Both the position numbers and the translations under genes were made by a program. DNA of 64,000 nt from contig CM121343.1 of the NCBI GenBank assembly GCA_051530055.1, positions 1,334,389 to 1,398,388 on the forward strand, written 5' to 3'. Below the pieces are notes generated by a model. It saw nothing but the letters and a program-made list of their open reading frames with translations. It did not search any database and was not told the DNA's origin. Below, in pieces: positions 2,246-39,076 of the stretch (the first letter of the stretch is position 1; each line of letters opens with the position of its first letter). The stretch comes from Neoechinorhynchus agilis (lineage: Eukaryota; Animalia; Acanthocephala).

Positions 2246-2249
2246 CAAT

Positions 2250-9090: not shown

Positions 9091-9124
9091 CATGACAAAG
9101 AAAAAATGTTCTTTAGAAAAAAAA

Positions 9125-10060: not shown

Positions 10061-10194
10061 TCATTTTGCTCAAGCCCGAAGAACAGGATAAGTCTACTTT
10101 AGGCGTAATTGAGTAAGTATAATCAATAAACCAAGACAACATTATGTTTGTATAACACGTTAGATCATTCACACCGCCGCTCTGGATCACTCAC

Positions 10195-11412
10195 AAGCAA
10201 ATCAAAATTGACAAAACTTTCGAAATCGATTTATTTTTTATGAAGATTGGCCGGCCGGTAACTTATATCGATGTGTGGCATATTATCACACGGCTGGGGC
10301 TGTGTGCCCAAAAATTTACAGCCGTGTGATAATAGGATACACATCGATATAAATCGATTTATGTGCGACTGTAAGATCTTTAAAAGTTCGTCCATCGCCG
10401 AGTATAGAACAAACTAAAGTTACTCAAATAAAGCCAATTTCTATGAGTATCTCAGTGCGAAGTGTAAGCAAAAAAATCAAAAACGTTTAATTTTTATTTT
10501 GCGACTGCGGTTCTTTAGTACTTCATAAAATCATTAGTGAAATAAAATTTAGCGGCTTATTTCAGTCCAACAATTCGGCTTTTTCCAAACTTTTATTTTT
10601 AGGTACTTTCTGCTTTCCGGTCAATCGTATACAAAATCTTATACATTGTAAGCAACGCTTTCAGTCTGAAATACGTTTTATAAATTTAAAAGAAAACATT
10701 TTTAATCATAACATAATAAAGTACAAAACGTGTAATCACCCCCGTCTGTAAAATTGGAGCTTCTCTCCTTTCTCGGCTGTCGCTGTCACGCCAACAACAT
10801 TGCCTCGTAGTACTGCGAGCGAAATATTACGCGAAACGTTGGTAATTCACTGACGAAAGCAAAACGATTCGATCGACGCTTCAAAAGAAAACCGTGTTTC
10901 TTTCGTGTTTACACGGCTTCTTTTCTCAACGTCGAATCGAGTGCGATTTTCGCTTTACCACTTTTCTGGAACGGCGTCGATGTGCTCTTTCGGGTGATTG
11001 AAATGAATTCGAGCATTTCGACTTTTCAAGGTGAGGAGATATTCAGGTTCAAGTAAAAAGGAAATCAATTTTTCCTTGGAACTGCGGTAATATTTTGAAA
11101 TGCGGAAATAATCTGACTTTATTCAGAATTAAAATTGCTGACTGATTTTTTAGCGAAAATGAAACAATTGTAAAATCTAGAAAAGTTTTTGTTTTGTGAG
11201 AATGTTTTATTTTGCTTGAACGTTATTGTGTTTGTGTTTTAGAGAAATTGTAAAACGTCAGAATTTGTATACTCAGAGAGAGTTTTCATTTAATAGCAAT
11301 CAGTTTACATTTTAAAACGGAGTTCCATGTAAATCGAAGGATCCCATGTAAGCGTAGCATAAACCTAGGAATTGCGCTTTTTTCCAAACGACACAGCAAC
11401 GATCTTGCCCTT
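10195..11412 (-). repeat. Repeat M1, inverted copy
   Basis: Reverse complement of 6620-7689, with an extra ~130-bp internal segment that is also present at 24960-25150 and 35570-35730. Confidence 0.92.
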
Positions 11413-11689
11413 TTGACCATCAACTCGAAAAAGACGGAATTCTTGACGATTCCGCATGTCGCGCATACAGTCTCTGGCGAAGGGCCGAATGGCGTTTAGC
11501 AATTAAAACAGATAGAGCGGTATGTCTATCTGGGAGCTGTCGTTCCTGAGGTGAGTGCGGATGTCAGCCGACGGAGAGCTAAAGCTTGGAGAGCAATGGG
11601 GCAACTTAAGCCACTCTTTGACAGTGAGTCTTTGCCGGATGAACTCCGTTCGGAGCTGTTCAGGGCTCTAATTGAGAGCATTCTCATGA
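11413..11689 (+). mobile_element. LINE RT C-terminal fragment (mirror copy 34712-34988, minus strand)
   Basis: LTINSKKTEFL...YVYLGAVV...DVSRRRAKAWRAMGQLKPLFDS...RSELFRALIESILM, which is the region downstream of YADD. Confidence 0.8.
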
Positions 11690-11785
11690 CCTGATTTTAA
11701 GAGACGCGAATTGCCCGCATAACAGGACTGCTGTCGTGTACTTTAGGTCCCTTGCGGAGTCTAATTCTATCTGACGGGCTAATAC

Positions 11786-13100
11786 CTACGGTGCAACGTA
11801 GGAAAGTACCGTTGCATACATACAATCGATAAGTGTCACCCAATCCTCGATACTTAAGGAAGGGGGTTCGCATTTCTCGTGTAATAAACTCGCGGTTAGT
11901 TTAGTCGCTTCTTTGAGTGGGATGTTGGTGAATAATGATTTTATGTCTGCCGTCATAAACCATCGGTTTTTAGGGTCCACTGTCCTGATAATATTCCCTA
12001 GTTGTGCTCACCTCATTTTTGAAGAGAACACTGTGGTGCATTGTTTAATCGGTCTTTCAAGATCTCAGATATTCCATTCTTTAAAACGCGAATTCGCATT
12101 TTGATGCTCTCAGTGTTGTTGAAACATTCACACTTTGAATAAATGGATCGCTTTTTTAAATAAACCATATCAACAAAATCGCAATGTTTAGAAAGTAAGT
12201 CAGGCGATAGTTCAATCGTTTTTGACTGTTGCATATTAGTGAAGCTGGCGTTACCATCGGCCTTCAACATCCTGTATTGGTCGACGTTAAGTTTCTTGAT
12301 CTCGATCACAAAAGTTGGGCCGTTCATCAATGTACGAGCCGGAGATTTGTAGGATTGATTCTAACAAAGCATTAATCTTTTTTGATAAACTGTTATCGAA
12401 GCACATATAACTGAGTATAATTGGAAGTTATTGAATGATGGGTTTGTTAATCTTCGGAAGTAGATACAGGATTGTATAATTGTTGGCCTATAGGAGGCGG
12501 GTTCAATGGGTACCTAAGGGAAATGTTAAAGTTGGACTCTCTGTTTTGGGTTGAGTCTTTGACCATCCCTTAAATTTATCTCAGCTCACAAGTCGCAAAT
12601 CCGCGTTGTTATAATCTTCAACATCCACCGCCATTAAAATACTCCTTTGTTAGGTTTGCAAATCCTTATTGCAGACACTTTCTTAAGGGGCCTCGTAATA
12701 ATTATTGAGATCGTTTATATATAAACACGTTTTATTAATTTAAGAAGAACGATCCATACACTTGCCAGCATCTATCTTTGCTGAGGTGTCTGGATGTCGG
12801 ATGTTGAGGCAGGGAGGTGGGACTTGTCTTTGAAGGAGTTTTACAGGAGAATGACCGATTGGGAGTCTTTCCTTGTTCTCCGGTTTCCAGCTTTGCTATC
12901 ATAGGCAATTACGGAGCTCGTCAGATCTGGGTTTGTGTTTATCAATAGTTCTGCATCACATCTAATATTGATACCTCGTATATTCTTCATAAAGTAGTCT
13001 GATACTTTGCTTAGCAAACCCAATTCACTTGGGGAGAACCTATGCAAGCTTGAGGCCTTACAAATCTCTGCATCCAACATTATAAAAAAGAACAAAGCAA
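11786..13100 (-). mobile_element. Penelope-like element RT and N-terminal fragments (mirror copy ~33310-34615, plus strand)
   Basis: FMTADIKSLFTNIPLKEA is the PLE-type RT motif. FSPSELGLLSK is a PLE N-terminal helix also seen at 55520. Confidence 0.8.
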
Positions 13101-13489
13101 ACTTTAGCTCAAAACTACTTGTCAGTGACCTATAAAAAGTCCATGGAAAAGGCCATACAACGCCGGGAGTACGAGCGGACATGCGGCCCGCTTATCCGAG
13201 CCATACAATACCAAATAATATATGACAAAACCTTTTTAGTTGACTGATGAGATAAGACTTCCTCGCGAAATATTTGATAACTCGAATCCACAGTACTGAA
13301 GCGCAAAATCATCTCACGAAAGGGGTAGTGAGTACTGAAACGAAAACAAATTATGGATCGAAGCAGAAAGCAAATGACGAACATGTAGAAAACGGATTGC
13401 AGTCAGCACGCAACAGTCAGTTTTCAAACCAAAAAGGGACTCATTGAACCAACACCAAACCCATACCCTTCCATTCTGGATAGCTCGCA

Positions 13490-14154
13490 TGGGGAAATAC
13501 GACAATGATGAAAGTAAAATCGACGAAGTTCGGCAAAACATTACAGAACGTTTTCCAGATAGTCATGGAAGAGAATTCATCGGTAGCCAGCCGGTATCAA
13601 TGACAGTTAATAATATTGAAACATTGCGGCAGTTAAATTATCGAGTAAGCTAGAAGGCCGACGGAACCCGGTACTTGTTTTTCATTCGAGAGAAAAACGA
13701 AATTTATATGATCGACAGGCGCAATTCAATCTTCAAAGTTACCAATCTTACGTTTGTGACGAACCGTGGCACTACAGATCATTTTCGTCAGATTTTGCTT
13801 GATGGAGAGATGGTGGAAGATATCGTGGTGGTACACAGATTCGTCGATTCCTTATATTTGACATCCTGGCATTCAACGGGCATTTTGCTGTAAGGAACTT
13901 AATTATGTCAAACGATCGGAACTCATATGGAGGGAGATTATGCAGCCTCGATGTCGTGCTATTATCGAATACAAAACTATAGACCGAAGTCGAGAGCCTT
14001 TTCGGATTCAAAAGAAGGATTTTGCGATCTCAGGTTCAATAAAAAAATTTTGAATGAAATGTTCCAAAATGACCTCCTTCAAGCAGACGGTCTTAAATTT
14101 CAGCCCGTTGATATGCCGTATATTTTTGGCACCTTCGACAAGCTGCTAAAATAA
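13490..14154 (+). pseudogene. RNGTT: mRNA capping enzyme guanylyltransferase-domain pseudogene, copy A
   Basis: FIGSQPVSM...YRVS*KADGTRYLFFI...YMIDRRNSIFKV...LLDGEMVED matches metazoan FPGAQPVSM..YKVSWKADGTRY..FMIDRDNSVF..LLDGEMI. TGG has become TAG just before motif I (KADG at 13654-13665), and frameshifts follow. Confidence 0.9.
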
Positions 14155-14889
14155 GGCATCAATTGGTAAATTTCAATTATGTATGGGTGTTAAATTTTCT
14201 TTTGCCAGTAATAATCACAAAAATTCATCTTATCGTTTATAGAAAAATCCAAAACCCGTCAGATCAATAGTATGAATGATTTTTGGACCATAAAAACTAA
14301 AATAAAGGATTTATGTTTTACCTCTTAGAATAAACTGAAAATAATTTAGTATAAAATTGAGTGGTTTTCTTTGTGAAACAATAGATTTTTCAAGAAAGTC
14401 AATCGAATTGCATTTGTGATTAATATTGAAAATATGCGTTTTTAAAGGCGCTAAGAGATAAACAAATGGCGAAGTAAAGGATAAAATATTATTATTTTTG
14501 ATTGCACTAAAGATCAAGAATTCGACAAAATGTATGAGCGCGAATTTTTTAGTTAAAAAGTTCTTTGTACAAATAGTTCATCAATTCTGACATTCATAAG
14601 TTTCCATTTCCAGTCGATGAAATTTTGGTTGGAATAGTGATCACAAGGGGTTAAAGAGGTAAGTGAAGGTTTTTGTAAATTACGCCATTCAGCCAGCAAT
14701 TTAATTCAAAATATCCATAAAGTAGTAACAAATCCGCCGTTTTTCAATATTAGTGATAACCATAAGACTCTTAATGATGACCATGGAATCTAGTAACCAT
14801 GAAAGGGTTACGAAAAAGTGTTAATGGCATGGACATCCTGTTATTTAGGACTATTTCACGCGAGTTAGCCGTTGATATATAAAGACAAT

Positions 14890-15830
14890 CTCTTACTTAT
14901 CTATAAAAGAAGTATCATTATTAAATCTTTTCTACAGAGAGAAAATTCTTTCAAAATGATATAAACTACCTCGGTAATTGATTCAATTTGTTATTTAGGT
15001 CTTCACCAGATAGAGAATATTTTATTACGGACGTTTGGTACCTCTTCGGTTTTATCATCAGTTCCACAAACAAGGGGTACATTAGTTGTTCTTGTTAAAC
15101 GCAACATTCGACGCTGCTGCCCTTCTCTGCATCTTGGTCCGCGTGTGTTCAGCCAATCTCGTCTTAAAATTCCGGCTTGTCTGACCGATTTATTTGCGCC
15201 CTCTTTTCTGTCTCCTTGTATTTTCGGGAAATGAGATTTTCTATCCTCATGAACGGTCGAAAGTAAAATTCGCATTTTATTTTCATACCGCTGCTAGTGA
15301 TTGTCTTCGAGATTTTGTGTCGATAAATGTTGGTCTGTGAACAACTTTCCGTCAATCCAATTCGCATTTCTGTTCGATTCGGAATCACAGTCGTTTCGCT
15401 TCGACTGGTTTATCTCCCTTGGCCTTTCTTGGATATCCCAACTTGCTAAAAATTCGCTCTTATCGCTAGAGTTCGTATCTGAGGCATTTCACACTGCAGA
15501 GGCTGAAGGTTGGACGCACAATGCCATTGAAAATGTCCTTTTTTGTTCTTGTTATGGGCACTAACCCAAAGTGAATAATTGTTCATTTCCGTGGACTTTT
15601 TATAAACTGAAGTGATCATTCGTGTATCCAGAAATGGTAATCCCCTATTCAGGTCAGGCCTAGTTCAAAAATAACGATTGAAAGTCTCAAAGAAGTTTGC
15701 GATTGCGGACTTGTTGCTGAGCAATGAGAAGCACAAATGAAAGTACCACAAAGTTCGATTGGTCGCAATAATTTCTTGGATAATGATGTATGAGAATTTC
15801 ATCCATCTGAAATTGGAATCAAAGAATAAT
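14890..15830 (-). mobile_element. PLE RT-thumb/linker fragment within a 4-copy module
   Basis: PFLDTRMITSVYKKSTEMNNY resembles the PLE thumb LPFLD...VYRKPT.T..Y. Copies: ~30830-31510 (-, internally deleted), ~40780-41710 (-), ~54020-54780 (+). Confidence 0.7.
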
Positions 15831-15971
15831 TCATTCTTTGATATAGTTTTCCCCACCGCCACAGTACAATAAGAAAACGTTTTATTGTTCGAAGTTAGCT
15901 TTTTTGCATATTTCACTCATTAAAAGTTATCAAAATGATTTTTATGAGTGTTGTTTAGGTCTTGGCCTTTT

Positions 15972-16112
15972 AAATAACTTTTTATTAGCTTTTTCGAACC
16001 TCACCGGGTTTAATCATTAGTTTCTTTGTAAGTTTTTCCAATCGCGAAAACTTACAAACAAACTGATTGTGAACCCGACGAGGTTCGAAACGCCATTAAT
16101 AAAAAATTATTT
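15972..16112. ncRNA. Fold-back palindrome with two head-to-head hammerhead-like motifs
   Basis: Right arm: CTGATTG-T-GAACC-cgacga-GGTTC-GAAA-CGCC (16063-16094). Left arm on the minus strand: CTAATGA..AAACC-cggtga-GGTTC-GAAA. A perfect inner IR tttgtaagtttt/aaaacttacaaa is present. Confidence 0.6.
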
Positions 16113-16153
16113 GCCGGGCCAACACCTAAGCAACACTTCTAATCATATAACCC

Positions 16154-16414
16154 AATCCGAAAAGGCTCTCGACTTCGGTTATAGTTTTATGTTCGATAAT
16201 AGCACGACAACGAGGTTGCATAATCTCCCTCCAACTGAGTTCCGATCGTTTGTCATAATTAAGTTCCTTACAGGCAGAATGCGCGTTGAATGCCAGGATG
16301 TCAAATTTAAGGAATCTAGGAATCTGTGTACCACCCACGACATCCTCCACAATCTCCCCATCAAGCAAAGTCTGAGGAAGATGATCTGTAGTGCCACGGT
16401 TCGTCACAAACGTA
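16154..16414 (-). pseudogene. RNGTT: Guanylyltransferase fragment, copy C (lacks motif I)
   Basis: QTLLDGEIVEDVVGGTQIPRFLKFDILAFN...WREIMQPRCRAI corresponds to motifs III/IIIa. Confidence 0.85.
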
Positions 16415-16859
16415 TGTAAACAATGGAAGCCAGCCGATTCTCTTTAAAACTACACTCGTTTTTTAACTAGCATAAACCGATATGAATTATCGGACTTCGC
16501 TGTCGCATTTAAAAGCTAGATTAGAGCGATTTTGAAATTCCCGAAAAATTGTAAATCTTCTTCTTGGTGAACAATCAAACCTGTAATATTCCTCGTTTTC
16601 TAATACTTCCACACGGAAACGATGTATTCACTTAGTCAACATGAATCTCTCATAACCGATCGAGCCGAGAATTGTGCGATCATCATATTTTTTAGCGGAC
16701 TTGAAATAGTGATTGGAATTGAAAGACCGATTAAATAATGCAACACCAAGCAGTGTTCTCTTCAAAAATTAGGTAAGCATCAATTGGGAATATATTCACG
16801 ATCTAATATTAAATTCAAAGATAAATCTCGAAATGTATTTTGACTATATCATTCGTGTG

Positions 16860-17950
16860 TGTGATAAAAGTCGTACTATTACAATTAAAAAGCCGAATTC
16901 ATAGATTGTACAAGAAAACAACTCCGTCGACCACGATTACTTTGACGAAGATTTTGAAAATGTAGAGCCAATTCCAAATACAACAGGTAAGTTTAAAATA
17001 TGCTTTAAATAAAAATTAATCAAATCTTTTTAGACGACGACCAAGAAGACATTGCAGATGAAAACTCATTTGAAGATTTGCATAGCGATTCCAGTAATGA
17101 CTGGTTAGGAATGGATAATTGATATAACCAAACACATCGAACCATACCATCAAGTTATATCGATTATGTTGTTATCGCTGAAACTTCAACCGCTATCGAT
17201 TGCAGTTCAAAAGACTTTGGCAACTATTCCGATGGAACTATAGAAGGAAGAATGCGGCCAGTACGATTATATAAAAACAAAATCGACCAAAATATAAGAT
17301 TCGAAGACAGTTGGGAAAAATGCTCTCTTCGTCCGAGGAATACGACGGAAAATATATTGAAGTAACTGAGTTGAAGCCACCAGGCGCTTTATCTACTTTC
17401 AGAAGCTACGAACGGGCACATATTTCGTGGATAAGACTAATGAAACAAAAGGAGGAAGACGATAAACATACCGATTGGTCCCACGATACTAAGAAATGCC
17501 GCGATTATGATTGGAGAATTTTTCAACAGCGGTGCAAATAGGAAAATCGAACAATTACAGCTTTTCGAGTTTGATTGGAAAATTCTATTTGGGGAATCAG
17601 ATTTGCAAGAAGCAGAAGTGGAAGAAGCAGAAAATTCATTATCAGTAAATGATGATAAATCTGATGGCAGCGAAGAATCTCCAGTGCAGAAACAATTGTG
17701 ATTCGTTCATTCGACCATTACGCCAAGACGGCAGCTAAGTTATCAAGAACGATGGCGTAAACGTTGACGAAGCTTGCTACGAAACCAGTAAAAATATATA
17801 GCGTTGAAAATGATAAGGATAAACAAATAAATATTTGTAAGTCGTACCTCGACACAAATATTTGGAATGATAGTGCATTTTTTTGGCAACCCAGAAATTC
17901 CAAGTATAACTCAAATAATGCCAACAACACAAAAATCTTTGAATGATACA
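16860..17950 (+). pseudogene. Intron-containing acidic orphan coding remnant (second copy ~43320-44400)
   Basis: A canonical 47-nt intron AG|gtaagt...tttttag at 16987-17033 (43437-43483) joins DEDFENVEPIPNTT to DDQEDIADENSFED. Several stops occur downstream. Confidence 0.5.
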
Positions 17951-18521
17951 TTTTCGTGCTTTCGCTTAATGGACGAATGATTTTATGCAGGCTGCCAGCT
18001 TTACAAGCAGGTTAAATCATAGCTTCGTGGTTCGTTTATTATTTTAGTTTTGAAAATTTATGTTGAATTTTCATTTATTTCATTGCATCAAGCTATCTTA
18101 AAGCATTAATAATTATCTCAATTAGAAGAAGATTTATCGATAAATTCAAATCGTTTTCTTCGTTCAATATGGTTTCAATTAAATGCTTGGAAAGAGGAGA
18201 GATATTGGATAACGATTTCCAGACAATTTTCGTTCGCGTTGCATCCTTGTAAAAATCTAATGAAATCCTAGCAAGAAATTTTTCAATTAAATCGAGGGTG
18301 GAAATTTCCGACCAACTTACATCATGAGATCTCAAATTGAAGCTGTGTTTTTGGTGTATTTTTGAAAGTAAAATCTGATGCCTCCACATATTTCGGAACA
18401 TCACGTGCATGGTTTCCTCAATGAAAAGTAGTCAATCAGCATGCGCCAATTACCTGTCTTTGTAAAAACATAGAATTTTAATGCTAAAGTAGTTGTAACG
18501 TATTAACAACAACTAAGTCGC

Positions 18522-19814
18522 TCACTGATACGTCGATTTAAGTCAATTTTTTAAGTTGACAACGTTTTCAGTCAGTGTCCGTTTAACTTGAGCGCTGTTT
18601 CGTCGATGCAAAATTGCGCTCCTTTCATCCAACAGATCAACTTTAATTCGGACATGTCCAGTTTAAGGTTTGTACCTACTATCCCCTCCCTGAGTGATTG
18701 CGAGGTTTTGAGTGATTGTGCACAAGTTTCCCAAGGGGATCAAATGTAACATTCTATTGACGCATCAAAGTTTAAGCGTCCGGTTAGAAAAGAAGACTTT
18801 GTTATTAAAATTCCCAAAGAAGCCATGAGTACTAAATCCCCCTCGTATTTTTCGCGTAATTACTACGAGAAGTACCTACAGCCTAATGGTCGAGAGAAGT
18901 CGATGAATTTTCTGATTAAGAGGTTCTCGGTGACTAAATTCCACATTCTATTTGCCTTCTTCGACGTGGCAGGCAAAGACCTCTTTTCTAAGATGTTGGG
19001 GGAGTTAAGCATACAGTCTATTGACCTTTCCCGTAGAGTCACCTTTCTTATGAGGAATCCTCCTCAAGACCTGGATTCTGTTGACTTTCGCAAAATTGAG
19101 GATGAGTTAGGAATTAAACTGGTTAAATATTTGTTTTGACCCAATGCCACTTCCGCCTACGCCATCAATGTTCAGCCACAATCAATGTCGCCGAGAGTTT
19201 GGCTAACTCCGGCAGGGGCTTCTTTTCATACTGGGTCACTTTCGACCGATATAAGGACTTTCTCTATGACTATAATTTGATAATCTGTCAGAAGTGTTCT
19301 AGATGGGGGCACCACGAATCGGACTGTGTATTTCCCTCCAGATGCATCTTTTGTGCAGGTCCTCACCACAAATCATCTTGCTCTCACTCCGATTCTGCCA
19401 CTTGTGCAAACTGTGGCAAGAGTCATCCGGCCTTTGAACGTTCTTGCAAGTTCGTGCAAAAATACCTTGACGATTCCTTATCATCGAAGCAGCGGGTCTA
19501 CTATAATAAAAATAATAGAGAAATCTATCCTCACAAAACTCCTCTCTATCCGGACGGCTTTTCCTCAAAGGAGTTGAAGACTCAATCTTCCTATCATGGT
19601 CACAACTCTAAGCTTCCCCATAAACCTCCGGAAAAATCTTTTTTTGATAGTTTAGTATCTTCCCGCTCGACTTCTCCACTTGGTACCGGTAAAGAAGTTT
19701 CCTTTCTTTAGGACATCCTTACTTGGATTCTTTATGCTGGAACGCATAAACTAAAGAATTAAGGGACTGATTTGTGTGTTTGTTTGTATGAGGCGTGAGT
19801 TTTAATAGTAATAT
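18522..19814 (+). mobile_element. ORF1-only non-autonomous LINE derivative with 11-bp TSD
   Basis: TSD aactaagtcgc at 18511-18521 and 19815-19825, with an empty site at ~46529-46539. ORF1 (18825-19711) has three knuckles (CQKCSRWGHHESDC, CIFCAGPHHKSSC, CANCGKSHPAFERSC), one stop and one frameshift. No ORF2 is present. Confidence 0.85.
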
Positions 19815-20270
19815 AACTAAGTCGCTTGTTCCGAAACGAATTTTCACGCCTCATTAGTTGTGTGTCATCAATTTTACGGTTCAATCGACAGATAAAAATC
19901 GACCTCTTTGACACGTATCGGTATTTCAACCGTAGACTCAATCCGTTAGTGATATCGTTTGTAACGTCTCGATAAGTGTCGAAAGCGACACAGTAAAGAA
20001 TTCCCCAATCAGAATGTTGCAAGTCAGCGGGGTTTTAGTGATATGAAATGTCATAAAATTTGCAGAAATTGCGTTAATTTTTATTTGGGATTATTTAAAA
20101 ATCACCAGTCATTCGAAGCGCTGCGGCAGGTTTATAGAAACATTTTGCTTTTAAGTTACTTATCTTTTTCGTAGATAATTAGAAGACCTGATAAAGAAAG
20201 TAAAGCCTCCAAAATCTCGACTAACCGTAGTTTCCTAATTTTAGATAGTTCAGAGCTACAGATTTGAAGT

Positions 20271-21015: not shown

Positions 21016-21412
21016 ACCATTCAAAGTTAAGTATCGATTATTAATAAAATGTGCTAGTTTTGTAACTGTTCGTGAAATTAAAAATATTTCATATTCGAAC
21101 AAGGCCTTGGCTCATTAGCACTTATACAATCATACAAATCCTTGGGAGCACTTGGTTTTTATATCACACTATTTCTTTATTTGTGGTACCCAATCCTCCA
21201 ATGTTCTAAATTTGAATTAGTGAGAGCGTTGGTAAGTGTGTACGCGAATTTAGAGGTCAGGTCAGAGATCGACGAAGCACTCCAGAATCTCTAAACACCT
21301 TTTATTTCTAGACCAAACTTCGTTGTCCTATGCGCGTAAATCTTTTCGATAAACATTCTGATATGACTCTTTCCCTTAACAGAACGAGATTTTAAAATAA
21401 AATTTGTTTTAA

Positions 21413-25792: not shown

Positions 25793-27048
25793 TGTGGTGA
25801 CTATCGATCCATGTGGACGCATAATTATTGATTTATATGTGTGTACATTTACCGTGGGGTGTGCAGATGTGGGGGTAAAAACATTAAAAATACAACTTAT
25901 GGACAAAACAGAAGAAGTCTCATTCACGACATCTGACGACAAGGGTCTTAGGATCCCAATGGAACGACAAAGTCAACTTTTGGAGGTAATATCGAAATGG
26001 ATATTGTTGAAGGAAGAGAAGGAGTAGGCGAGGGTTCCGGCATTCCGTACGCTTTATGAGCAGGAGCAGAGGTGGGACAACTATGAAGCTCAAATGGAAG
26101 AACACTTTAAGATATATGGCGTAATAGATGCTACCATAAAAAGTGCGTGTTTGTTGTCATGGTTGAGTCCAAAAAGCTACGAGACCGCCAACAAGAGCAG
26201 AGGAGCCAGGCCGATCACGGATTGTGCGTACGAGGAGTTGATTCAAATCATGAGGAAGTTGGATGTAATAGAGGCTCAAGAGGTGATATGCCGATATAAA
26301 TTCTATAATACTAACATGAAAATCGGACAATCCTACAGAGAATCGTTTATTGAATTGTGGGGAGCTTCTAAAGGATGCAATTCCATAAAGCAGTGATAGA
26401 CAATGAGATAACGGCTGCATCATTTCACATTAGAGATATGATCCTGTTCAACACGCCGCACGATGAAGTTCCAAAGAGGGCTCTTCAAGAGCCCAATCTC
26501 ACATTAGATGTGCTCCTTAAGATTTCGACAACGTTCGAATCGACGAATAAGACGATCGAAATGCTGCGACAACCGAATCGACCAGAGATATTTTTCGACG
26601 TTTGAAAAGAGACAGACCCAGTTGAAATGCCCGAATCTTGGCAAGTGGAAGCATTCCAAGTTTTTCTGTGTCATGCAAGAAGTGCCATTTGTTTCAAGTG
26701 TCAGAAGAAGGGGCATTTTGCTCGATGTTGCTGCCTACAAGTTAATGTGTTAAAAAAAGAAGATGACGATATGAAATTAGATAATTCGAGTATCGTAAGC
26801 GATGATGGAATGGAAAACGTGAGCAGCATTAAGTCATTGCGAGGTGTTCGGATCGCGGATACGATTGCAACGCCATGGGAATTTTTCAGGTACAAACGCT
26901 TGCCTTTTGGAATATTAGCAGCCCACGCATAATTATTGATCTATATGTGTTTACATGTACAGTAAGGTGTGCCAGTGTGCAGATGTGGGGGTAAAAACAT
27001 TAAAAAATACAACTAATGGACAAAACAGAAGAAGCCTTATTCACGACA
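25793..27048 (+). mobile_element. Internally deleted Ty3/Gypsy element with ~139-bp LTRs
   Basis: LTR TG..CA at 25793-25931, followed by a degenerate PBS (tctgacgacaagg). Gag at ~26030-26760 (WDNYEAQMEEHF, IRDMILFNTP, CFKCQKKGHFARCC), an RT scrap TPWEFFRYKRLPFG, and a partial second LTR at 26925-27048. Confidence 0.75.
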
Positions 27049-28042
27049 ACTATAATTATTGACCTTGATTTATTTATGCACCGAGCAAGAATACCTGCAA
27101 GAAAGTCGCTATGACACGAAGGTTTACCCAATGACAAGTTACCATCATAAAGGACTAATTAGCGTGGCTCATATGAATGTGGCAGTTGATTTTGGCGTTG
27201 ATTACGGGTCACGTCGGGTGGGAAGTCCATTGATTGGGAATTGGTGGTTATGGTATGTAGTAGATTTTGTGAGGTTGGGCTTTTCCTCCGGTTAATTTCG
27301 TGTCTTGATATCCGTGAAAATTGGGCAGTATAATAGCACGTTTTATTTTGGTCAAAGTAGAGGAATCATGTACCTATGGGTCACCGCGATAAGAAACGCA
27401 AAGCTTCTCAGAATGACTGATCATTTCAGTTCGAGCTTCAAGACTTGTTCGTTGTATCATTTTAGCCGAAGAAAGTTTAGACATGAATTCAGAGTATCTT
27501 AGCCATGCTACTTGTGGTGGAATATCCGCTGTTGTAAACAAAACGACGGATTAATCAAGTCTAGTTCATCCAAGTCATCAACGAACTTTCTCACTGAAGG
27601 TAGACGACAAGGTAACCAGGCCCCGATGACATCCAAAAAATGGCACTGCAAATTCCGATTTAGGATTTAATGAAAATGAAGACAGCTTAGCCCAATCACA
27701 TTTAACATTCGAAGTCGTTACTAAGTAGTACTCACCCGACGAAACCTTAACTGAAAGATTACTATACTGAGCCTGGATTAATTTAGAGAACAAATACGCC
27801 TGAAGATCGGCGGGCATAAAGATGGAGGTGTGGAAATCTTTTCGTTGACGCTCATCATTAATAGAGTCGATCGTCCTCCTGACCAATGAAAGTTTAGGAG
27901 GTTAGCCAAACACATAAAATTGGTGATGACCGTCAAGCTGGCTCCATAGGATGATAATGGAGTGTCTAGGTAAGCAACCACTTTATAGGGACTAAAACTA
28001 CTCATACCAGCAATATCCTCCAGAAAGATAGTCATCAAGAGT

Positions 28043-28531
28043 TCTCTAACTCTGATATCCAATAGCATTTTCATCAACATAATCCAGTTCCAGATCCAGT
28101 ATAAACATCATAAAAGACTTCCTTCATCTTTGATTTCTACGGAATTCACTGAAAAAAGAAAGGGAGGGTTCACGTAGTTATACGAAGAGCATCTCTATAG
28201 CTAATTACAACGTATCAAATGCTTTTACGCTACCCTCTCACACTGTTCTTAAAATCTCGGAACTATTTTTTACAAGAGATTGGTCCGAGATTGTTGATCT
28301 CCGGAGATTCTCACGATGCTTTCTAACTCCATCTCAACATACAGGGAAATCTGTAAATGGCTTCTCTGGAGGCTTACAATCTGTTATCTTAAGAAAATGG
28401 AAACCGAAACTTCTTATACAAAAAGAGAACGGTGATTTTGCCTATCAAGTTCTATCGATGATCAATCCCTTTTATTCACACTTTCTTTCTCTAGGAATGC
28501 ACTTGATCATTGCGAATTTTTATGTTGCACC
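28043..28531 (+). repeat. Direct duplication of 36624-37113
   Basis: Shared tctgatatccaatagcatttt...tttatgttgcacct. It includes the start of a LINE AP-endonuclease-like segment. Confidence 0.88.
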
Positions 28532-29960
28532 TCAAAAAATTTCTTTATTTTTAAAATCAAACGCCAATAAGATTCAGGTATGGAATCAAGTCGTGGTTGG
28601 AGGAGATATTAACTCAAATTTTTTAGCCCCATTTTTTTTAAACTATTATAATTTCATAATCCTGTATTACCGAAATTTCCGTCTTTTCACAATTACCGGA
28701 AAGATTCCCATTAATTTTTAGATTGTTTATTCATTAAGAAATTTCTATTCAATTGACTTTCTACCCCACTCTACAAATGCAGTCTCAACAAATAATGGGA
28801 CACGGTTGTATTGATTTATCTGATTTCTCTCTTAGAAAATTTAATGAACAAATTACCCTATTAAAATTATCTTAGACTCTGCTAACTCATGCTTGGTAAA
28901 GAAAGCTTTTATACGTATAGAATTCAATTCTAAAAATGCTAATTTGATCTACAATTAAGCTCCAATCGCAAATCTTTGTAACATGACAGAAATGTACAAA
29001 TATTATATGTGGCAATTTTACATTATATTATATAACGAGGAATGGGAAATGGACAAGAAAGCTCTTTTTTATGTGAAGCCTACTCTAAACTCGGCTGGAA
29101 CATTATTTTAAAAAAGAAATCCATCAGCTGGAAAGCTAAAGCTGCAAGTTGGGTTGGTTCGGTATCTTATCCTTTGGTCGTTAAATCTACTCTTAACGCT
29201 CATACCTTTAATGCATTTATTAAACCTCCAATTCCCCCCCAGCAAAATATCGCAATAAATCAATATCTTTATTGTCCGGGGAGTAGGAATCACCTCAGTA
29301 ACAAATATTTTAGTTGGAATTTGAGTGAAGAAGAGTTACTAAAGGCTTGGAAATATAATTCATCCCTTGCAAATAATAATTATGCAGTTTCACCTTTTAT
29401 ATTATTCACTAGTGTGAATGAAAAGAACAAATTGCTATTTTTAAAACACTTTAATGGCAAAATCAACATTGATGAATTAATAGAACTACATGTTGTAAAG
29501 AATATCTTCATCTCGAAAAACGAAGCTAAAATCACTAATGCCTCCCATATTTGAATTATTACAATACAAAACCCTGCAATCTCGGTCCTTGAACGAGAAA
29601 TTGAACATAAATTAATGAGTGATCTGTTGAAGAGAAATTCTATTCCAAAATACTTTCACTCTATCAGACGAATTCTAAAAAAACATTTCAAGTTTCAATT
29701 GGACCCCGCAGTCATGTACAACGTATTATTAACATTTATTAGCGGATTGATTTGCTTTTTTGCACGAGGACGTCCCCCAGAACTTAGAATGTTCTTTTTT
29801 AATAAATGCAGAAATAAATTACAAACGATTTGTCGACAATTTAATTTTAGCTCTACTCTCCTCTCAGCACTTTATAGAATTTTTCCAAGGTTTATTTTTT
29901 CCGCTCTAGTAGTCCCCTTTCTAAATATATATTGGACTACAGTAACTTGTTTCTGATTTC
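28300..29960 (+). mobile_element. Degraded LINE ORF2 (AP endonuclease and linker)
   Basis: LIIANFYVAP...VVVGGDINSNF is the APE GDFN motif. 29488-29640 matches the LINE at 38161-38293/39071-39110. Confidence 0.6.
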
Positions 29961-31151
29961 ATGCTCACAGAATACCTCTTTTAGAGATTCCACACTTAGT
30001 AAGAAAAACAATTTTAGGGGGTGATATTTTTAATAATTTACTAGTCTGATTTTGCAAAATGACTGAAAAAGACAAAAATATATGTATGTTTGATTCTCAA
30101 AAGTAATTTTTAGTAAAAGAAGGAGAGTATGGGTATTGAGGAGCTTAGAGATCGCTCAAACTCAGCTCCTACTATCCTTTAGTCTCCTATTTTTCGTTTG
30201 GAGCTCAATAGAGTCGAACTCTCAAGCAATTAATTTTATCTGTATAACAGTACAACAGTATGCATGTGAAATAAATAAAAAAACGCAGACAAATAAGATG
30301 CCGATGAATAGCCGAGTAAAGAATGCTGGTCTTGTTCCAATCTTTATGTTAGACCTCAAATGGCAAGTTTCGGCCTTGTGCAAGGAGGGGTCGTTGTTTG
30401 GCAAATTAAAAGTGTTAACATTCAACCATCAGAAGGCATAACTTATAGTAAAGATGTTCATCATTTACTTTTTATAGCAAATTATAATAATTGATTTATT
30501 TGATAATTTCCGACATTGGTGTAGACCTTCTTCGGTCTATTGCTTGCAAGTTTTTTCAACTATGAATCGTCGACGAGGGTAAGATCCACGAGGCTGTATT
30601 TAACGCTGCTGCAATGTCTCATGGAGAAACAGCAAGAATTAATGGAGATGATGATAAAGCAAATTGTGATTTAAAAGAAAATGGAAACGCTGCGCAAGAC
30701 AGCATGTTACTGGAAATATTTGCTGGGCCAAAATAGAAAGTGTTTCAAATGTAGAAGGATGGGACACTTGGCAGCCTTCGAGTATATAAACATTAAAGCT
30801 GCTCGAAATTGTAACACGTATTAATTTAGTTTCGCTGACTATTTTATTGATCAATATGGCACAACTCAGAGCAAAAGAAACAATCCATTCCAACCAAAAT
30901 ATTCCTTTGTTTGCTAGATTTAAATTGCTCCCTCGCTCGCTCCATTCTGCGACTACATGGCCAACTGTGAATAACCAAAGACGATTTAAGAAACACTCGT
31001 TTGCAGAATTCGCATTCCTGACGCACATCCTTTGGGGTATCATTGCGGTCACTAAATCAATTTTGGTTAATAAAGGATTCTAATTTCAAATGGATGAAAT
31101 TCCCCTACCTCATTATGCAAGAAATTATTTCGACCAATCGAACTTTGTGAT

Positions 31152-34100
31152 ACCGTTCATGAGGATAGAAAATCTCATTTCCCGAAAATACAAGGAGACA
31201 GAAAAGAGGGCGCAAATAAATCGGTCAGACAAGCCGGAATTTTAAGACGAGATTGGCTGAACACACGCGGACCAAGATGCAGAGAAGGGCAGCAGCGTCG
31301 AATGTTGCGTTTAACAAGAACAACTAATGTACCCCTTGTTTGTGGAACTGATGATAAAACCGAAGAGGTACCAAACGTCCGTAATAAAATATTCTCTATC
31401 TGGTGAAGACCTAAATAACAAATTGAATCAATTACCGAGGTAGTTTATATCATTTTGAAAGAATTTTCTCTCTGTAGAAAAGATTTAATAATGATACTTC
31501 TTTTATAGATAAGTAAGAGATTGTCTTTATATATCAACGGCTAACTCGCGTGAAATAGTCCTAAATAACAGGATGTCCATGCCATTAACACTTTTTCGTA
31601 ACCCTTTCATGGTTACTAGATTCCATGGTCATCATTAAGAGTCTTATGGTTATCACTAATATTGAAAAACGGCGGATTTGTTACTACTTTATGGATATTT
31701 TGAATTAAATTGCTGGCTGAATGGCGTAATTTACAAAAACCTTCACTTACCTCTTTAACCCCTTGTGATCACTATTCCAACCAAAATTTCATCGACTGGA
31801 AATGGAAACTTATGAATGTCAGAATTGATGAACTATTTGTACAAAGAACTTTTTAACTAAAAAATTCGCGCTCATACATTTTGTCGAATTCTTGATCTTT
31901 AGTGCAATCAAAAATAATAATATTTTATCCTTTACTTCGCCATTTGTTTATCTCTTAGCGCCTTTAAAAACGCATATTTTCAATATTAATCACAAATGCA
32001 ATTCGATTGACTTTCTTGAAAAATCTATTGTTTCACAAAGAAAACCACTCAATTTTATACTAAATTATTTTCAGTTTATTCTAAGAGGTAAAACATAAAT
32101 CCTTTATTTTAGTTTTTATGGTCCAAAAATCATTCATACTATTGATCTGACGGGTTTTGGATTTTTCTATAAACGATAAGATGAATTTTTGTGATTATTA
32201 CTGGCAAAAGAAAATTTAACACCCATACATAATTGAAATTTACCAATTGATGCCTTATTTTAGCAGCTTGTCGAAGGTGCCAAAAATATACGGCATATCA
32301 ACGGGCTGAAATTTAAGACCGTCTGCTTGAAGGAGGTCATTTTGGAACATTTCATTCAAAATTTTTTTATTGAACCTGAGATCGCAAAATCCTTCTTTTG
32401 AATCCGAAAAGGCTCTCGACTTCGGTCTATAGTTTTGTATTCGATAATAGCACGACATCGAGGCTGCATAATCTCCCTCCATATGAGTTCCGATCGTTTG
32501 ACATAATTAAGTTCCTTACAGCAAAATGCCCGTTGAATGCCAGGATGTCAAATATAAGGAATCGACGAATCTGTGTACCACCACGATATCTTCCACCATC
32601 TCTCCATCAAGCAAAATCTGACGAAAATGATCTGTAGTGCCACGGTTCGTCACAAACGTAAGATTGGTAACTTTGAAGATTGAATTGCGCCTGTCGATCA
32701 TATAAATTTCGTTTTTCTCTCGAATGAAAAACAAGTACCGGGTTCCGTCGGCCTTCTAGCTTACTCGATAATTTAACTGCCGCAATGTTTCAATATTATT
32801 AACTGTCATTGATACCGGCTGGCTACCGATGAATTCTCTTCCATGACTATCTGGAAAAAGTTCTGTAATGTTTTGCCGAACTTCGTCGATTTTACTTTCA
32901 TCATTGTCGTATTTCCCCATGCGAGCTATCCAGAATGGAAGGGTATGGGTTTGGTGTTGGTTCAATGAGTCCCTTTTTGGTTTGAAAACTGACTGTTGCG
33001 TGCTGACTGCAATCCGTTTTCTACATGTTCGTCATTTGCTTTCTGCTTCGATCCATAATTTGTTTTCGTTTCAGTACTCACTACCCCTTTCGTGAGATGA
33101 TTTTGCGCTTCAGTACTGTGGATTCGAGTTATCAAATATTTCGCGAGGAAGTCTTATCTCATCAGTCAACTAAAAAGGTTTTGTCATATATTATTTGGTA
33201 TTGTATGGCTCGGATAAGCGGGCCGCATGTCCGCTCGTACTCCCGGCGTTGTATGGCCTTTTCCATGGACTTTTTATAGGTCACTGACAAGTAGTTTTGA
33301 GCTAAAGTTTGCTTTGTTCTTTTTTATAATGTTGGATGCAGAGATTTGTAAGGCCTCAAGCTTGCATAGGTTCTCCCCAAGTGAATTGGGTTTGCTAAGC
33401 AAAGTATCAGACTACTTTATGAAGAATATACGAGGTATCAATATTAGATGTGATGCAGAACTATTGATAAACACAAACCCAGATCTGACGAGCTCCGTAA
33501 TTGCCTATGATAGCAAAGCTGGAAACCGGAGAACAAGGAAAGACTCCCAATCGGTCATTCTCCTGTAAAACTCCTTCAAAGACAAGTCCCACCTCCATGC
33601 CTCAACATCCGACATCCAGACACCCCAGCAAAGATAGATGCTGGCAAGTGTATGGATCGTTCTTCTTAAATTAATAAAACGTGTTTATATATAAACGATC
33701 TCAATAATTATTACGAGGCCCCTTAAGAAAGTGTCTGCAATAAGGATTTGCAAACCTAACAAAGGAGTATTTTAATGGCGGTGGATGTTGAAGATTATAA
33801 CAACGCGGATTTGCGACTTGTGAGCTGAGATAAATTTAAGGGATGGTCAAAGACTCAACCCAAAACAGAGAGTCCAACTTTAACATTTCCCTTAGGTACC
33901 CATTGAACCCGCCTCCTATAGGCCAACAATTATACAATCCTGTATCTACTTCCGAAGATTAACAAACCCATCATTCAATAACTTCCAATTATACTCAGTT
34001 ATATGTGCTTCGATAACAGTTTATCAAAAAAGATTAATGCTTTGTTAGAATCAATCCTACAAATCTCCGGCTCGTACATTGCCCAACTTTTGTGATCGAG

Positions 34101-36314
34101 ATCAGGAAACTTAACGTCGACCAATACAGGATGTTGAAGGCCGATGGTAACGCCAACTTCACTAATATGCAACAGTCAAAAACGATTGAACTATCGCCTG
34201 ACTTACTTTCTAAACATTGCGATTTTGTTGATATGGTTTATTTAAAAAAGCGATCCATTTATTCAAAGTGTGAATGTTTCAACAACACTGAGAGCATCAA
34301 AATGCGAATTCGCGTTTTAAAGAATGGAATATCTGAGATCTTGAAAGACCGATTAAACAATGCACCACAGTGTTCTCTTCAAAAATGAGGTGAGCACAAC
34401 TAGGGAATATTATCAGGACAGTGGACCCTAAAAACCGATGGTTTATGACGGCAGACATAAAATCATTATTCACCAACATCCCACTCAAAGAAGCGACTAA
34501 ACTAACCGCGAGTTTATTACACGAGAAATGCGAACCCCCTTCCTTAAGTATCGAGGATTGGGTGACACTTATCGATTGTATGTATGCAACGGTACTTTCC
34601 TACGTTGCACCGTAGGTATTAGCCCGTCAGATAGAATTAGACTCCGCAAGGGACCTAAAGTACACGACAGCAGTCCTGTTATGCGGGCAATTCGCGTCTC
34701 TTAAAATCAGGTCATGAGAATGCTCTCAATTAGAGCCCTGAACAGCTCCGAACGGAGTTCATCCGGCAAAGACTCACTGTCAAAGAGTGGCTTAAGTTGC
34801 CCCATTGCTCTCCAAGCTTTAGCTCTCCGTCGGCTGACATCCGCACTCACCTCAGGAACGACAGCTCCCAGATAGACATACCGCTCTATCTGTTTTAATT
34901 GCTAAACGCCATTCGGCCCTTCGCCAGAGACTGTATGCGCGACATGCGGAATCGTCAAGAATTCCGTCTTTTTCGAGTTGATGGTCAAAAGGGCAAGATC
35001 GTTGCTGTGTCGTTTGGAAAAAAGCGCAATTCCTAGGTTTATGCTACGCTTACATGGGATCCTTCGATTTACATGGAACTCCGTTTTAAAATGTAAACTG
35101 ATTGCTATTAAATGAAAACTCTCTCTGAGTATACAAATTCTGACGTTTTACAATTTCTCTAAAACACAAACACAATAACGTTCAAGCAAAATAAAACATT
35201 CTCACAAAACAAAAACTTTTCTAGATTTTACAATTGTTTCATTTTCGCTAAAAAATCAGTCAGCAATTTTAATTCTGAATAAAGTCAGATTATTTCCGCA
35301 TTTCAAAATATTACCGCAGTTCCAAGGAAAAATTGATTTCCTTTTTACTTGAACCTGAATATCTCCTCACCTTGAAAAGTCGAAATGCTCGAATTCATTT
35401 CAATCACCCGAAAGAGCACATCGACGCCGTTCCAGAAAAGTGGTAAAGCGAAAATCGCACTCGATTCGACGTTGAGAAAAGAAGCCGTGTAAACACGAAA
35501 GAAACACGGTTTTCTTTTGAAGCGTCGATCGAATCGTTTTGCTTTCGTCAGTGAATTACCAACGTTTCGCGTAATATTTCGCTCGCAGTACTACGAGGCA
35601 ATGTTGTTGGCGTGACAGCGACAGCCGAGAAAGGAGAGAAGCTCCAATTTTACAGACGGTGGTGATTACACGTTTTGTACTTTATTATGTTATGATTAAA
35701 AAATGTTTTCTTTTAAATTTATAAAACGTATTTCAGACTGAAAGCGTTGCTTACAATGTATAAGATTTTGTATACGATTGACCGGAAAGCAGAAAGTACC
35801 TAAAAATAAAAGTTTGGAAAAAGCCGAATTGTTGGACTGAAATAAGCCGCTAAATTTTATTTCACTAATGATTTTATGAAGTACTAAAGAACCGCAGTCG
35901 CAAAATAAAAATTAAACGTTTTTGATTTTTTTGCTTACACTTCGCACTGAGATACTCATAGAAATTGGCTTTATTTGAGTAACTTTAGTTTGTTCTATAC
36001 TCGGCGATGGACGAACTTTTAAAGATCTTACAGTCGCACATAAATCGATTTATATCGATGTGTATCCTATTATCACACGGCTGTAAATTTTTGGGCACAC
36101 AGCCCCAGCCGTGTGATAATATGCCACACATCGATATAAGTTACCGGCCGGCCAATCTTCATAAAAAATAAATCGATTTCGAAAGTTTTGTCAATTTTGA
36201 TTTGCTTGTGAGTGATCCAGAGCGGCGGTGTGAATGATCTAACGTGTTATACAAACATAATGTTGTCTTGGTTTATTGATTATACTTACTCAATTACGCC
36301 TAAAGTAGACTTAT
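31152..36314. repeat. Right arm of the 5.2-kb inverted repeat
   Basis: Reverse complement of 10088-15257. By eye there are only scattered substitutions and one ~8-nt indel near 34080. Confidence 0.97.
32255..32919 (-). pseudogene. RNGTT: Guanylyltransferase pseudogene, copy B (mirror of A)
   Basis: Same stop and frameshifts as copy A; ITELFPD here versus ITERFPD in A. Confidence 0.9.
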
Positions 36315-39070: not shown

Positions 39071-39076
39071 AATTAA

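Follow-up and report, generated by a model that had tools for sequence, protein, structure and literature searches.

Inverted, near-identical blocks in a repeat-rich region of a Neoechinorhynchus agilis chromosome are probably older paralogs matched by gene conversion

Contents of the arms and spacer

Neoechinorhynchus agilis (Acanthocephala) is a parasite of fish. In the window analysed here, a 64-kb stretch of record CM121343.1, two long blocks of sequence are present in opposite orientation. The left arm (L) occupies positions 10088-15257 (5170 nt) and matches the reverse complement of the right arm (R) at 31152-36314 (5163 nt). Between them lies a spacer of 15,894 nt (15258-31151) made up of decayed repeats. 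Reverse-complement alignment gave exact limits for both arms, 10088/36314 on the outside and 15257/31152 on the inside, which agree with those proposed in a previous sequence-only reading of this DNA. An arm match of such length is impossible by chance.

The arms had been described as differing very little, and the exact count is eight differences. Six are substitutions (L positions 10741, 12245, 12296, 12784, 12812 and 13550), one is an 8-nt indel at 12320-12327 whose nucleotides are present in L only, and one is a 1-nt indel near 10698 that corresponds to a homopolymer length difference (T5 versus T6). Identity is 99.88% over aligned bases, equivalent to a divergence of 0.12%, or 99.71% when gaps are counted. 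The central 2.85 kb of the arms is only marginally enriched in these eight differences (P=0.06). Beyond the outer edges, the identity between L and R falls at once to noise level.

The arms are a non-coding mosaic of a multi-copy repeat, remnants of retroelement reverse transcriptase (RT) sequence and a 0.6-kb piece of a capping-enzyme gene. Specifically, they are arranged in the order repeat A, retroelement debris, capping-enzyme gene fragment and repeat Y. Apart from the frameshifted capping-enzyme fragment, no intact open reading frame or domain was found in the arms, and the public annotation calls no gene in the left arm.

The outermost ~108 nt of the left arm (10088-10195) include a 27-nt motif at 10164-10190, which recurs in inverted form at 9062-9088 and is also found at 36212-36238 and 8002-8028. 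Repeat A follows at 10196-11415 (minus strand) in L and at 34986-36206 (plus strand) in R. Other copies are located at 6615-7689 (in the paralog c1), at 50237-51060 (c4) and, in two parts, at 23037-23514 and 24754-25197 (c5). The earlier label M1 could be matched to no defined family, but the arms do include a multi-copy repeat that occurs five times in the window. An Rfam scan of the whole window returned no family.

The RT remnants in L (11825-12469, minus strand) consist of two collinear pieces, 12469-12302 and 11956-11825, and are mirrored in R at 33940-34576 on the plus strand. They match RVT_1 with an E value of 0.006, which is under the curated cut-off, and they yield collinear tblastx matches (E=2e-9) to an RT-bearing element of N. 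agilis with Penelope-like motifs, whose relatives carry RVT_1. These matches lend weak support to RT remnants of the kind that had been called PLE fragments. In addition, a LINE RT tail had been proposed at 11500-11619, for which Pfam gave no confirmation. A large-database search using the putative LINE tail and the RT fragments as queries produced no match at E<=0.001.

The best defined component is the capping-enzyme (guanylyltransferase) gene fragment, which is found at 13570-14151 (plus strand) in L and as the same fragment at 32258-32839 (minus strand) in R. Its assignment as a capping-enzyme pseudogene is borne out by a match to PF01331 (E=3e-25), but the sequence is merely a mid-exon fragment of ~0.6 kb. 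The L fragment retains a KxDG motif, breaks off mid-exon and is disrupted by one in-frame stop and no fewer than three frameshifts. It is 78% identical at the nucleotide level to the functional N. agilis gene and falls wholly inside one exon of that gene. Because the fragment sits within a single exon, it does not discriminate between a processed and a genomic origin.

Pfam queries were constructed from stop-free segments joined by X, an approach that is sensitive only to segments of 38-50 amino acids or more; searches with isolated long open reading frames were uninformative. No transposase, integrase, polymerase, pPolB or capsid domain was detected in the arms or on either strand of the spacer at E<=0.1. 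The earlier statement that the spacer holds no transposase, pPolB or capsid gene is therefore correct for both strands at the sensitivity of Pfam.

The sole Pfam domain in the spacer belongs to a second capping-enzyme fragment (16126-16407, minus strand), which is less degraded than that of the arms. It lies in or near a segment at the left of the spacer (S, 16154-21138) that comprises the capping-enzyme fragment and ~4.7 kb of further sequence, and that is a direct paralog of 42604-47974 (92-98% identity). The spacer also contains copies of repeats present elsewhere in the window. One additional segment, at 23607-24284, shows collinear coding similarity to sequence upstream of the N. agilis capping-enzyme gene. 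The possibility that it represents the missing N-terminal exons of a processed capping-enzyme pseudogene was considered and rejected, since this segment is a retroelement fragment with Penelope-like motifs.

Paralogous copies that cross the arm edges

The outer flanks of the two arms, GAAGAACAGG immediately to the left of L and ATTTGTTGAA immediately to the right of R, are unrelated to each other. A comparison of these flanks revealed no direct repeat, and the absence of a target site duplication (TSD) around the whole unit, as noted earlier from the same flanks, was confirmed. Moreover, the arm edges are not the termini of an element, because copies in the window that have diverged by 2-4% run collinearly across them.

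At the inner edges, the informative copy is a paralog (T, 40591-42865) that is 96% identical to the inner ~1.5 kb of the arms and continues collinearly past both inner edges. On the left, sequence beyond the arm (15258-15820) is collinear with T. On the right, sequence beyond the arm (30878-31151) is collinear with T (40591-40871) after a gap of 487 bp. The missing sequence corresponds to L positions 15258-15744, and R lacks it relative to both L and T. The sequence-only reading had noted that the right inner edge coincides with a ~490-bp deletion relative to a copy at 40865-41355, and this observation holds. The joint at the R inner edge has a microhomology of 2 nt (GT).

Past the gap, L 15745-15820 is homologous to R 31151-31076, with 68 of 76 positions identical (89%) and R nearer to T. 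The inner limit is therefore not the end of homology, as L and R can be aligned for 76 bp further, although this diverged homology spans just those 76 bp. Since L is in register with T to 15820 and R is so after the gap, with 68/76 identity between the two, diverged homology surrounds the near-identical block.

At the outer edges, two paralogs are informative. The first, c1 (6615-8366), consists of repeat A, an inverted 87-nt arm end (7945-8031), a segment at 8080-8129 and then the flank of R (flank B). Positions 8080-8129 of c1 correspond to R 36292-36341 and hence span the R outer edge, and flank B at c1 8136-8366 is 98% identical to 36394-36624.

The second, c4 (50237-51968), has an inverted L-type arrangement in which repeat A is joined to the left outer flank (flank D, 9118-10087), whose inverted paralog lies at 51968-51061. 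A clean 331-bp deletion in c4 covers the L outer edge. This deletion removes the L junction itself, and c4 thus speaks to the age of that junction indirectly. Global alignment of c4 with L gave 96.4% identity within the arm and 97.6% within the flank, a difference that is not significant (p=0.16). An apparently far greater divergence of the arm side, seen when separate BLAST pieces were compared, disappears in this alignment.

We also considered whether the inverted 27-nt motifs at 9062 and 10190 could mark a small element with terminal inverted repeats (TIRs) that straddles the L edge. This reading was rejected: only 27-66 nt are alike at the far end, and the arm-end segment also recurs inverted in c1.

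Origin of the arm identity

The near-identical block corresponds to the longest stretch over which two older inverted paralogs are homologous without a break. The structure as a whole is best read as a passive, non-mobile pair of inverted blocks within a repeat- and duplication-rich island of the N. agilis chromosome. The explanation that we consider probable is that older inverted paralogs were made near-identical by recent gene conversion from arm to arm. The previous reading had left a very recent inverted duplication and homogenisation by conversion as alternatives, and the paralogs favour conversion and make the very recent duplication less likely. The outer arrangements are found in copies that are 2-4% diverged (directly in c1, by extrapolation in c4), as compared with 0.12% for the arms, and homology beyond the inner edge stands at 89%. 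Consequently, neither outer junction appears to be as young as the identity of the arms would suggest. These lines of evidence on age and conversion are drawn from paralogs inside a single 64-kb window of one assembly.

From these sequence comparisons, we infer that conversion caused the identity, in which direction it ran and in which order deletion and conversion took place. An inverted segmental duplication, old enough for several per cent of divergence to have accrued since, would have created two mosaic copies in opposite orientation ~16 kb apart. The right copy would later have acquired the 487-bp deletion, and the copies would also have come to differ in what lies past the outer end. 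Recent non-allelic gene conversion could then have copied one block onto the other, most likely from right to left, as one long tract or as several tracts. A length of 5.2 kb is long for a single conversion event.

The limits of the homogenised stretch would be set on the outside by the points at which outer-flank homology stops (10088/36314) and on the inside by the edge of the 487-bp deletion (15257/31152). Indeed, the identical block ends on either side at a structural heterology, and it is at such places that a conversion tract would be expected to terminate. Elsewhere, multi-kilobase conversion tracts and inverted-repeat arms kept more than 99.9% identical by conversion have been documented (PMC3723533).

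Several sites suggest that the right arm is the likelier donor. The L flank is identical to T at 161 of 161 positions (15258-15418), beginning exactly at 15258, and both arms carry two mismatches to T in the last 12 bp inside the edge. At the outer end, the final 18 nt of the arm and the R flank are contiguous and collinear in c1. Furthermore, the paralog c5b has the R state at two of the eight differences between L and R. A repeat A tree was rejected as a guide to the donor, for the repeat is a mosaic in which the arms are closer to c4 in some 150-nt windows and closer to c1 in others. The direction of transfer consequently rests on few sites, because the repeat A tree is mosaic and uninformative.

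Other paralog pairs in the window also contain perfect runs that exceed the expectation under uniform divergence. These include 397 bp between L and c4 in flank D (P=1e-4) and 235 bp between R and c1 (P=0.002), as well as a run between S and T (P ~0.01). Such long perfect runs are as expected if ectopic conversion is active in the region, which they suggest.

The foremost alternative is that the arms stem from one very recent inverted duplication, underwent no conversion afterwards and are alike because they are young. Such a duplication could arise by replication template switching or by a staggered-break inversion that duplicates the sequence at its breakpoints. The latter model is known from Drosophila inversions, in which an inverted duplication of the breakpoint region flanks the inverted segment; it predicts arms that are as old as the inversion and no prior homology at the new site. 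The N. agilis structure resembles these inversions in having two ‘ancestral’ and two ‘novel’ junctions. Specifically, the L inner and R outer junctions are collinear with paralogs and the L outer and R inner junctions look novel, which is the pattern of a one-step inversion with duplication. The sharp edges, the unrelated outer flanks, the microhomology of only 2 nt at the R inner junction and the mere eight differences between arms are also consistent with this route.

However, both outer arrangements are already held by older paralogs, unlike in a staggered-break inversion. The L-type arm and flank are present in c4 at ~3% divergence and the R type runs across the R edge in c1 at 2-4%, so that under a clock the age of both outer junctions would exceed that of the arm divergence more than 20-fold. 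Likewise, the 89% homology between L and R past the inner edge requires that homology pre-existed at the left site, as opposed to a chance landing. We therefore give a one-step duplication a small though real chance of being correct. A variant in which each arm is an independent recent insertion of one large element was rejected, as there is no TSD for each copy, the ends are not common to the paralogs, and identity past the 487-bp gap reaches only 89%.

An assembly artefact, by which one arm was falsely duplicated or diverged copies were over-homogenised during hybrid correction or polishing of pooled reads, is unlikely. The genome was assembled with MaSuRCA as a hybrid of Illumina reads and of nanopore reads obtained from ~50 pooled worms, and was then processed with purge_dups and scaffolded with Hi-C data (PMC12690905). 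A hybrid assembly of pooled nanopore and Illumina reads could understate the true divergence of the arms (PMC12690905). A precedent in favour of an artefact comes from Adineta vaga, a related rotifer, for which the palindromes of an early assembly turned out to have been produced when phased haplotypes were scaffolded (PMC8494291). That one of the eight arm differences is a homopolymer length change counts in the same direction.

Nevertheless, the window contains no N, and no arm edge falls at a DpnII or HinfI site as used by the scaffolder. The surroundings differ from one arm to the other, and on both sides they are corroborated by independent diverged paralogs. The joint at the R inner edge, with its 2-nt microhomology, is of the deletion type and not a join at a repeat overlap. 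Because substitutions and the 8-nt indel were kept between the arms, the assembler must have resolved two copies, and other paralog pairs at 2-4% divergence were kept apart in the same assembly. Mis-scaffolding of haplotypes predicts allelic flanks or a gap between the arms. Neither is seen, and the flanks are non-homologous.

Another reading assigns the pair a function: in an animal without an RNA-dependent RNA polymerase, it would form the centre of a locus that gives rise to small RNAs. Read-through double-stranded RNA would target the repeat families of the arms themselves, conversion would preserve the match between the arms, since poorly matched ones would work less well, and recombination would let the spacer alternate between two states within the population. 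We regard this proposal as improbable. The piRNAs of N. agilis show a ping-pong signature, and their loci are clustered (PMC12256650); small-RNA data for the species exist under PRJNA1127840. Like hairpin-RNA loci and dual-strand small-RNA loci, the inverted transposon-derived copies could form double-stranded RNA, but a loop of 15.9 kb greatly exceeds those of known hairpin-RNA genes.

Finally, a giant transposon with 5.2-kb TIRs and 15.9 kb of cargo is highly improbable, in agreement with the sequence-only reading: the two inverted arms with a core recall the outline of Maverick/Polinton-type elements, and the 27-nt motif does form inverted pairs near the left edge, but there is no TSD and Pfam detected no mobility gene in the arms or spacer. 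In addition, the R outer edge is crossed by c1 and the L inner edge by T, and the arms themselves are pieced together from debris of unrelated repeats and part of a host gene.

Relation to known inverted repeats and consequences

The inverted pair is a known and fairly ordinary kind of structure, and it represents no new kind of biology. Its closest parallels include the palindromes of primate sex chromosomes (human Y palindromes P1-P8 and those of the X), in which near-identical inverted arms likewise enclose a non-duplicated spacer. The arms of these palindromes are more than 99.9% identical, undergo intrachromosomal conversion with multi-kilobase tracts, and can invert the spacer by crossing over (PMC3723533, PMC8327919). 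The operational cut-off for a palindrome specifies arms of more than 8 kb (PMC8327919). In N. agilis, identity exceeds 99% and the spacer is shorter than 500 kb, but the arms, at 5.2 kb, fall below this length. They also differ from the primate arms, which carry (testis-expressed) gene families, in holding debris and a gene fragment with no intact gene. The chromosome is not known to be a sex chromosome, and conversion has been deduced from the paralogs of one window rather than from orthologous palindromes or pedigrees.

A second parallel is provided by the inverted low-copy repeats around FLNA-EMD at human Xq28 (palindrome P24), which are near-identical, of kilobase scale and tens of kilobases apart. 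An inversion polymorphism at these repeats was reportedly described by Small et al. in 1997. Through non-allelic homologous recombination, repeats of this type can reverse the orientation of the segment that they enclose (PMC8327919). Unlike the FLNA-EMD segment, the N. agilis spacer has no recognisable gene.

Plausibly, crossing over between the arms would reverse the orientation of the spacer, and read-through transcription of the arms would yield long double-stranded RNA. The locus is one where the assembly merits scrutiny with long reads and where the orientation of the spacer may be polymorphic.

The practical value of these findings is modest, and includes the removal of a candidate ‘giant transposon’. 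They also offer a worked example of how a young duplication might be distinguished from concerted evolution in a single sequence, by means of older paralogs that cross the edges of the arms. More broadly, the observations suggest that ectopic gene conversion may be active in the repeat islands of this parasite, whose genome is very small (46 Mb). If so, the dating of repeats and duplications would be affected there, because the identity between copies will understate their age.

Arms of the inverted structure and their contents

A reverse-complement repeat search and a self-BLAST of the window place the two arms at 10088-15257 (left, L) and 31152-36314 (right, R), spaced by 15,894 nt, exactly where the sequence-only reading had put them. 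Direct alignment of the arms, each extended by 300 nt of flank at both ends, reveals within them six substitutions (three transitions and three transversions; 0.12% divergence over aligned bases), a T run of five versus six, and a single 8-nt indel. Beyond the outer edges, the aligned sequences match little better than random. The 8-nt difference is a deletion with 1-nt microhomology, and only one of the differences is a homopolymer length change. These look like genuine mutations. The flanking decamers are as quoted in that earlier reading, which was also right that the outer flanks of the whole structure carry no target-site duplication (TSD). The window as a whole is eukaryotic, repeat-rich and poor in ORFs, contains no N, and yielded no Rfam families. 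A protein 99% identical to its one long ORF is encoded on N. agilis record CM121343.1 (7.8 Mb, GCA_051530055.1), and the sequence of that locus agrees at 100% with window 1-15587, which places the window in this chromosome-scale record.

Pfam scans, for which stop-free segments linked by X served as input, gave a sole match in the arm, to the catalytic domain of mRNA capping enzyme (PF01331, E=3e-25). The matching sequence (13570-14151) has the KxDG motif but, read frame by frame, carries one in-frame stop and at least three frameshifts; its nearest protein is from N. agilis (58% amino acid and 78% nucleotide identity). Because comparison with the N. agilis gene shows part of a single exon, with an identical cut-off point in all four window copies, the reported capping-enzyme pseudogene is present only as a 0.6-kb gene fragment. 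A second, less degraded fragment (Pfam) lies in the spacer at 16126-16407, and apart from it the spacer has no detectable Pfam domain on either strand, which bears out the earlier statement that no transposase, pPolB or capsid gene is located there. The capping-enzyme frame is open for 93-116 aa across the copies in the spacer-left segment (16154-21138) and in a further paralog, T (40591-42865), whereas the arm copies are frameshifted.

Each arm also shows two collinear tblastx matches, in L at 12469-12302 and 11956-11825 (E=2e-9), to a retroelement from L001, an N. agilis locus that also holds a capping-enzyme gene. The nearest database relatives of this element bear RVT_1, its motifs are ones we take to be Penelope-like, and one arm fragment has a sub-threshold RVT_1 match (E=0.006). 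The LINE reverse transcriptase tail proposed at 11500-11619 was not recovered by Pfam scans or database search. An internally deleted copy of the L001-type element was found by tblastx in the spacer at 23607-24284 (+). Both it and the L001 element (6903-8969) carry Penelope-like N-terminal and endonuclease-like motifs; the reverse transcriptase part (about 1.4 kb in L001) is absent from the window copy, where the two ends adjoin. Two further places in the window, 58086-58247 and 58901-59080, match more weakly. Repeat A, which has five copies within the window, makes up the outer 1.2 kb of each arm.

Arm edges in older paralogs and the origin of arm identity

Judged from their paralogs, the arm edges are not element termini. 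The key evidence is that older copies of arm parts in the window cross the edges or share their arrangement. In c1 (6615-8366), repeat A is followed by an inverted copy of the arm's last 87 nt, then by 50 nt matching R 36292-36341, which pass straight over the right outer edge, and then by the right outer flank at 98% identity. In c4 (50237-51968), repeat A is joined to the left outer flank in the same order and relative orientation as in L, but the edge itself has been lost in a clean 331-bp deletion (L 10061-10391); identity to L is 96.4% in the arm and 97.6% in the flank (p=0.16). The right outer-edge arrangement is thus directly shared with a 2-4% diverged copy, and we infer that the left arrangement is common to another such copy, c4.

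A 27-nt motif, GTGATCCAGAGCGG[CT]GGTGTGAATGAT, is found at four sites that form inverted pairs (9062-9088, 10164-10190, 36212-36238 and 8002-8028), and the 87-nt segment bearing it is inverted in c1 relative to the arms. A MITE-like end or a local inversion of small size could explain this pattern.

At the inner edges, T is about 96% identical to arm sequence and runs collinearly with L past the arm edge as far as 15820. Its collinearity with R is interrupted by 487 bp missing from R (L 15258-15744), after which R runs on to 30878. Past this gap the two sides can be aligned for 76 bp at only 68/76 identity, and there T is nearer to R than to L. The right inner junction has 2-nt microhomology. 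Relative to T, the left inner edge is seamless, and by this comparison the two sides past the right-copy deletion are old, diverged homologues.

Since the arms differ by 0.12%, yet their outer arrangements occur in 2-4% diverged copies and diverged homology continues past the deletion, the simplest account is pre-existing inverted paralogs and recent non-allelic gene conversion. Two inverted paralogous blocks would already have been in place, and conversion would have homogenised the stretch of uninterrupted homology between them, bounded outside by the point beyond which the flanks are unlike and inside by the 487-bp deletion. Such heterologies are where a conversion tract would be expected to end. 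The donor was probably the right copy, because the arm's last 18 nt are contiguous with right-type flank in c1, because the L flank is identical to T at 161/161 positions from the exact edge whereas the 12 nt just inside the edge differ from T at two positions in both arms, and because a further paralog has the R state at two of the L/R differences. Perfect runs far exceed expectation from mean divergence in several older paralog pairs (L-c4, 397 bp, P=1e-4; R-c1, 235 bp, P=0.002; spacer-left segment and T, P about 0.01), a pattern consistent with frequent ectopic conversion in this island. Human Y palindrome P6 offers precedent both for conversion tracts of several kb and for arms kept >99.9% identical in this way (PMC3723533).

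A recent inverted duplication in a single step would account for the sharpness of the edges and for the two junctions that look novel, but we consider it unlikely, as it leaves unexplained both the presence of the outer arrangements in diverged copies and the diverged homology running past the inner edge. Of the origins proposed by the sequence-only reading, conversion is therefore favoured over recent duplication by the edge-sharing paralogs, and that reading's rejection of a TIR transposon stands.

An assembly artefact, whose most credible form would be arms made too alike by read correction, is quite improbable. It merits attention, since the 46-Mb genome is a MaSuRCA hybrid assembly of nanopore (about 50 pooled worms) and Illumina reads, to which purge_dups and instaGRAAL Hi-C scaffolding were then applied (PMC12690905), and since palindromes of the first Adineta vaga assembly proved to be scaffolding artefacts (PMC8494291). 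Here, however, no gap is present, the arm edges lie away from the scaffolder's restriction sites, and diverged paralogs confirm the context of each arm. In addition, the joint at R's inner edge is of deletion type and not a repeat overlap, and other copies that are 2-4% diverged were kept separate in this same assembly. A giant TIR transposon is scarcely credible, since a TSD, detectable mobility genes and true termini are all missing. The idea that one large element inserted twice, recently and independently, was rejected on the same grounds and on the 89% identity past the gap.

Neighbouring features of the window

In a direct segmental duplication of ~5 kb (16154-21138 and 42604-47974, 92-98% identical and about 26.4 kb apart), both copies begin at one shared derived breakpoint inside the capping-enzyme fragment. 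One copy holds a 231-aa ORF (47147-47842, +) with repeated PPGFEN-type motifs and no Pfam match, and its spacer paralog (about 20271-20926) is split into shorter ORFs. About 1.1 kb before the window begins, at 4567-4710 of L002 (a locus extending upstream), there is a 93% identical second copy of 145 nt (11686-11829) from the middle of the arm, a part that is otherwise unique. Because it falls partly within an annotated 205-aa gene model, that model may be repeat-derived.

A GC-rich island at about 2000-6100 (GC 0.49-0.52, versus about 0.38 elsewhere) includes a 99-nt unit repeated 1.8 times (3122-3301) and a feature at 3889-5518 (+) with a 352-aa ORF (4267-5325) that has no Pfam match. Toti-like viral polyproteins of 2000-3000 aa, which bear RdRP_4 farther downstream, are distantly related to this ORF around their residues 224-779 (24-34% identity); the RdRp-like part is absent from the window. 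The feature, a host gene of 424 aa in the public annotation, has the look of a fragmentary endogenous viral element. An inverted repeat at 38325-38459 and 38937-39071 (135 nt, 84% complementary, 477 nt apart) is possibly a small TIR element, and a satellite array (62656-64000; 48-nt unit, 94-nt dimer, about 28 copies, 79% matches) runs off the window end.

Expected consequences and relation to known palindromes

Arms of such size and identity would be crossover substrates, and crossing over would invert the 15.9-kb spacer. Because of the arm identity, the 487-bp deletion can be assigned to one arm or the other only for the present spacer orientation. Read-through transcription would yield long dsRNA. 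A small-RNA role of the inverted pair is conceivable but improbable; N. agilis has kept piRNAs with a ping-pong signature and clustered piRNA loci, and lacks RNA-dependent RNA polymerase (PMC12256650).

Near-identical inverted arms, a unique spacer and putative conversion liken the structure to mammalian sex-chromosome palindromes and inverted low-copy repeats. Unlike those palindromes, it has arms below the operational length of >8 kb (PMC8327919) and carries no genes. The structure adds one more example to a known kind, from a phylum that has received little study.
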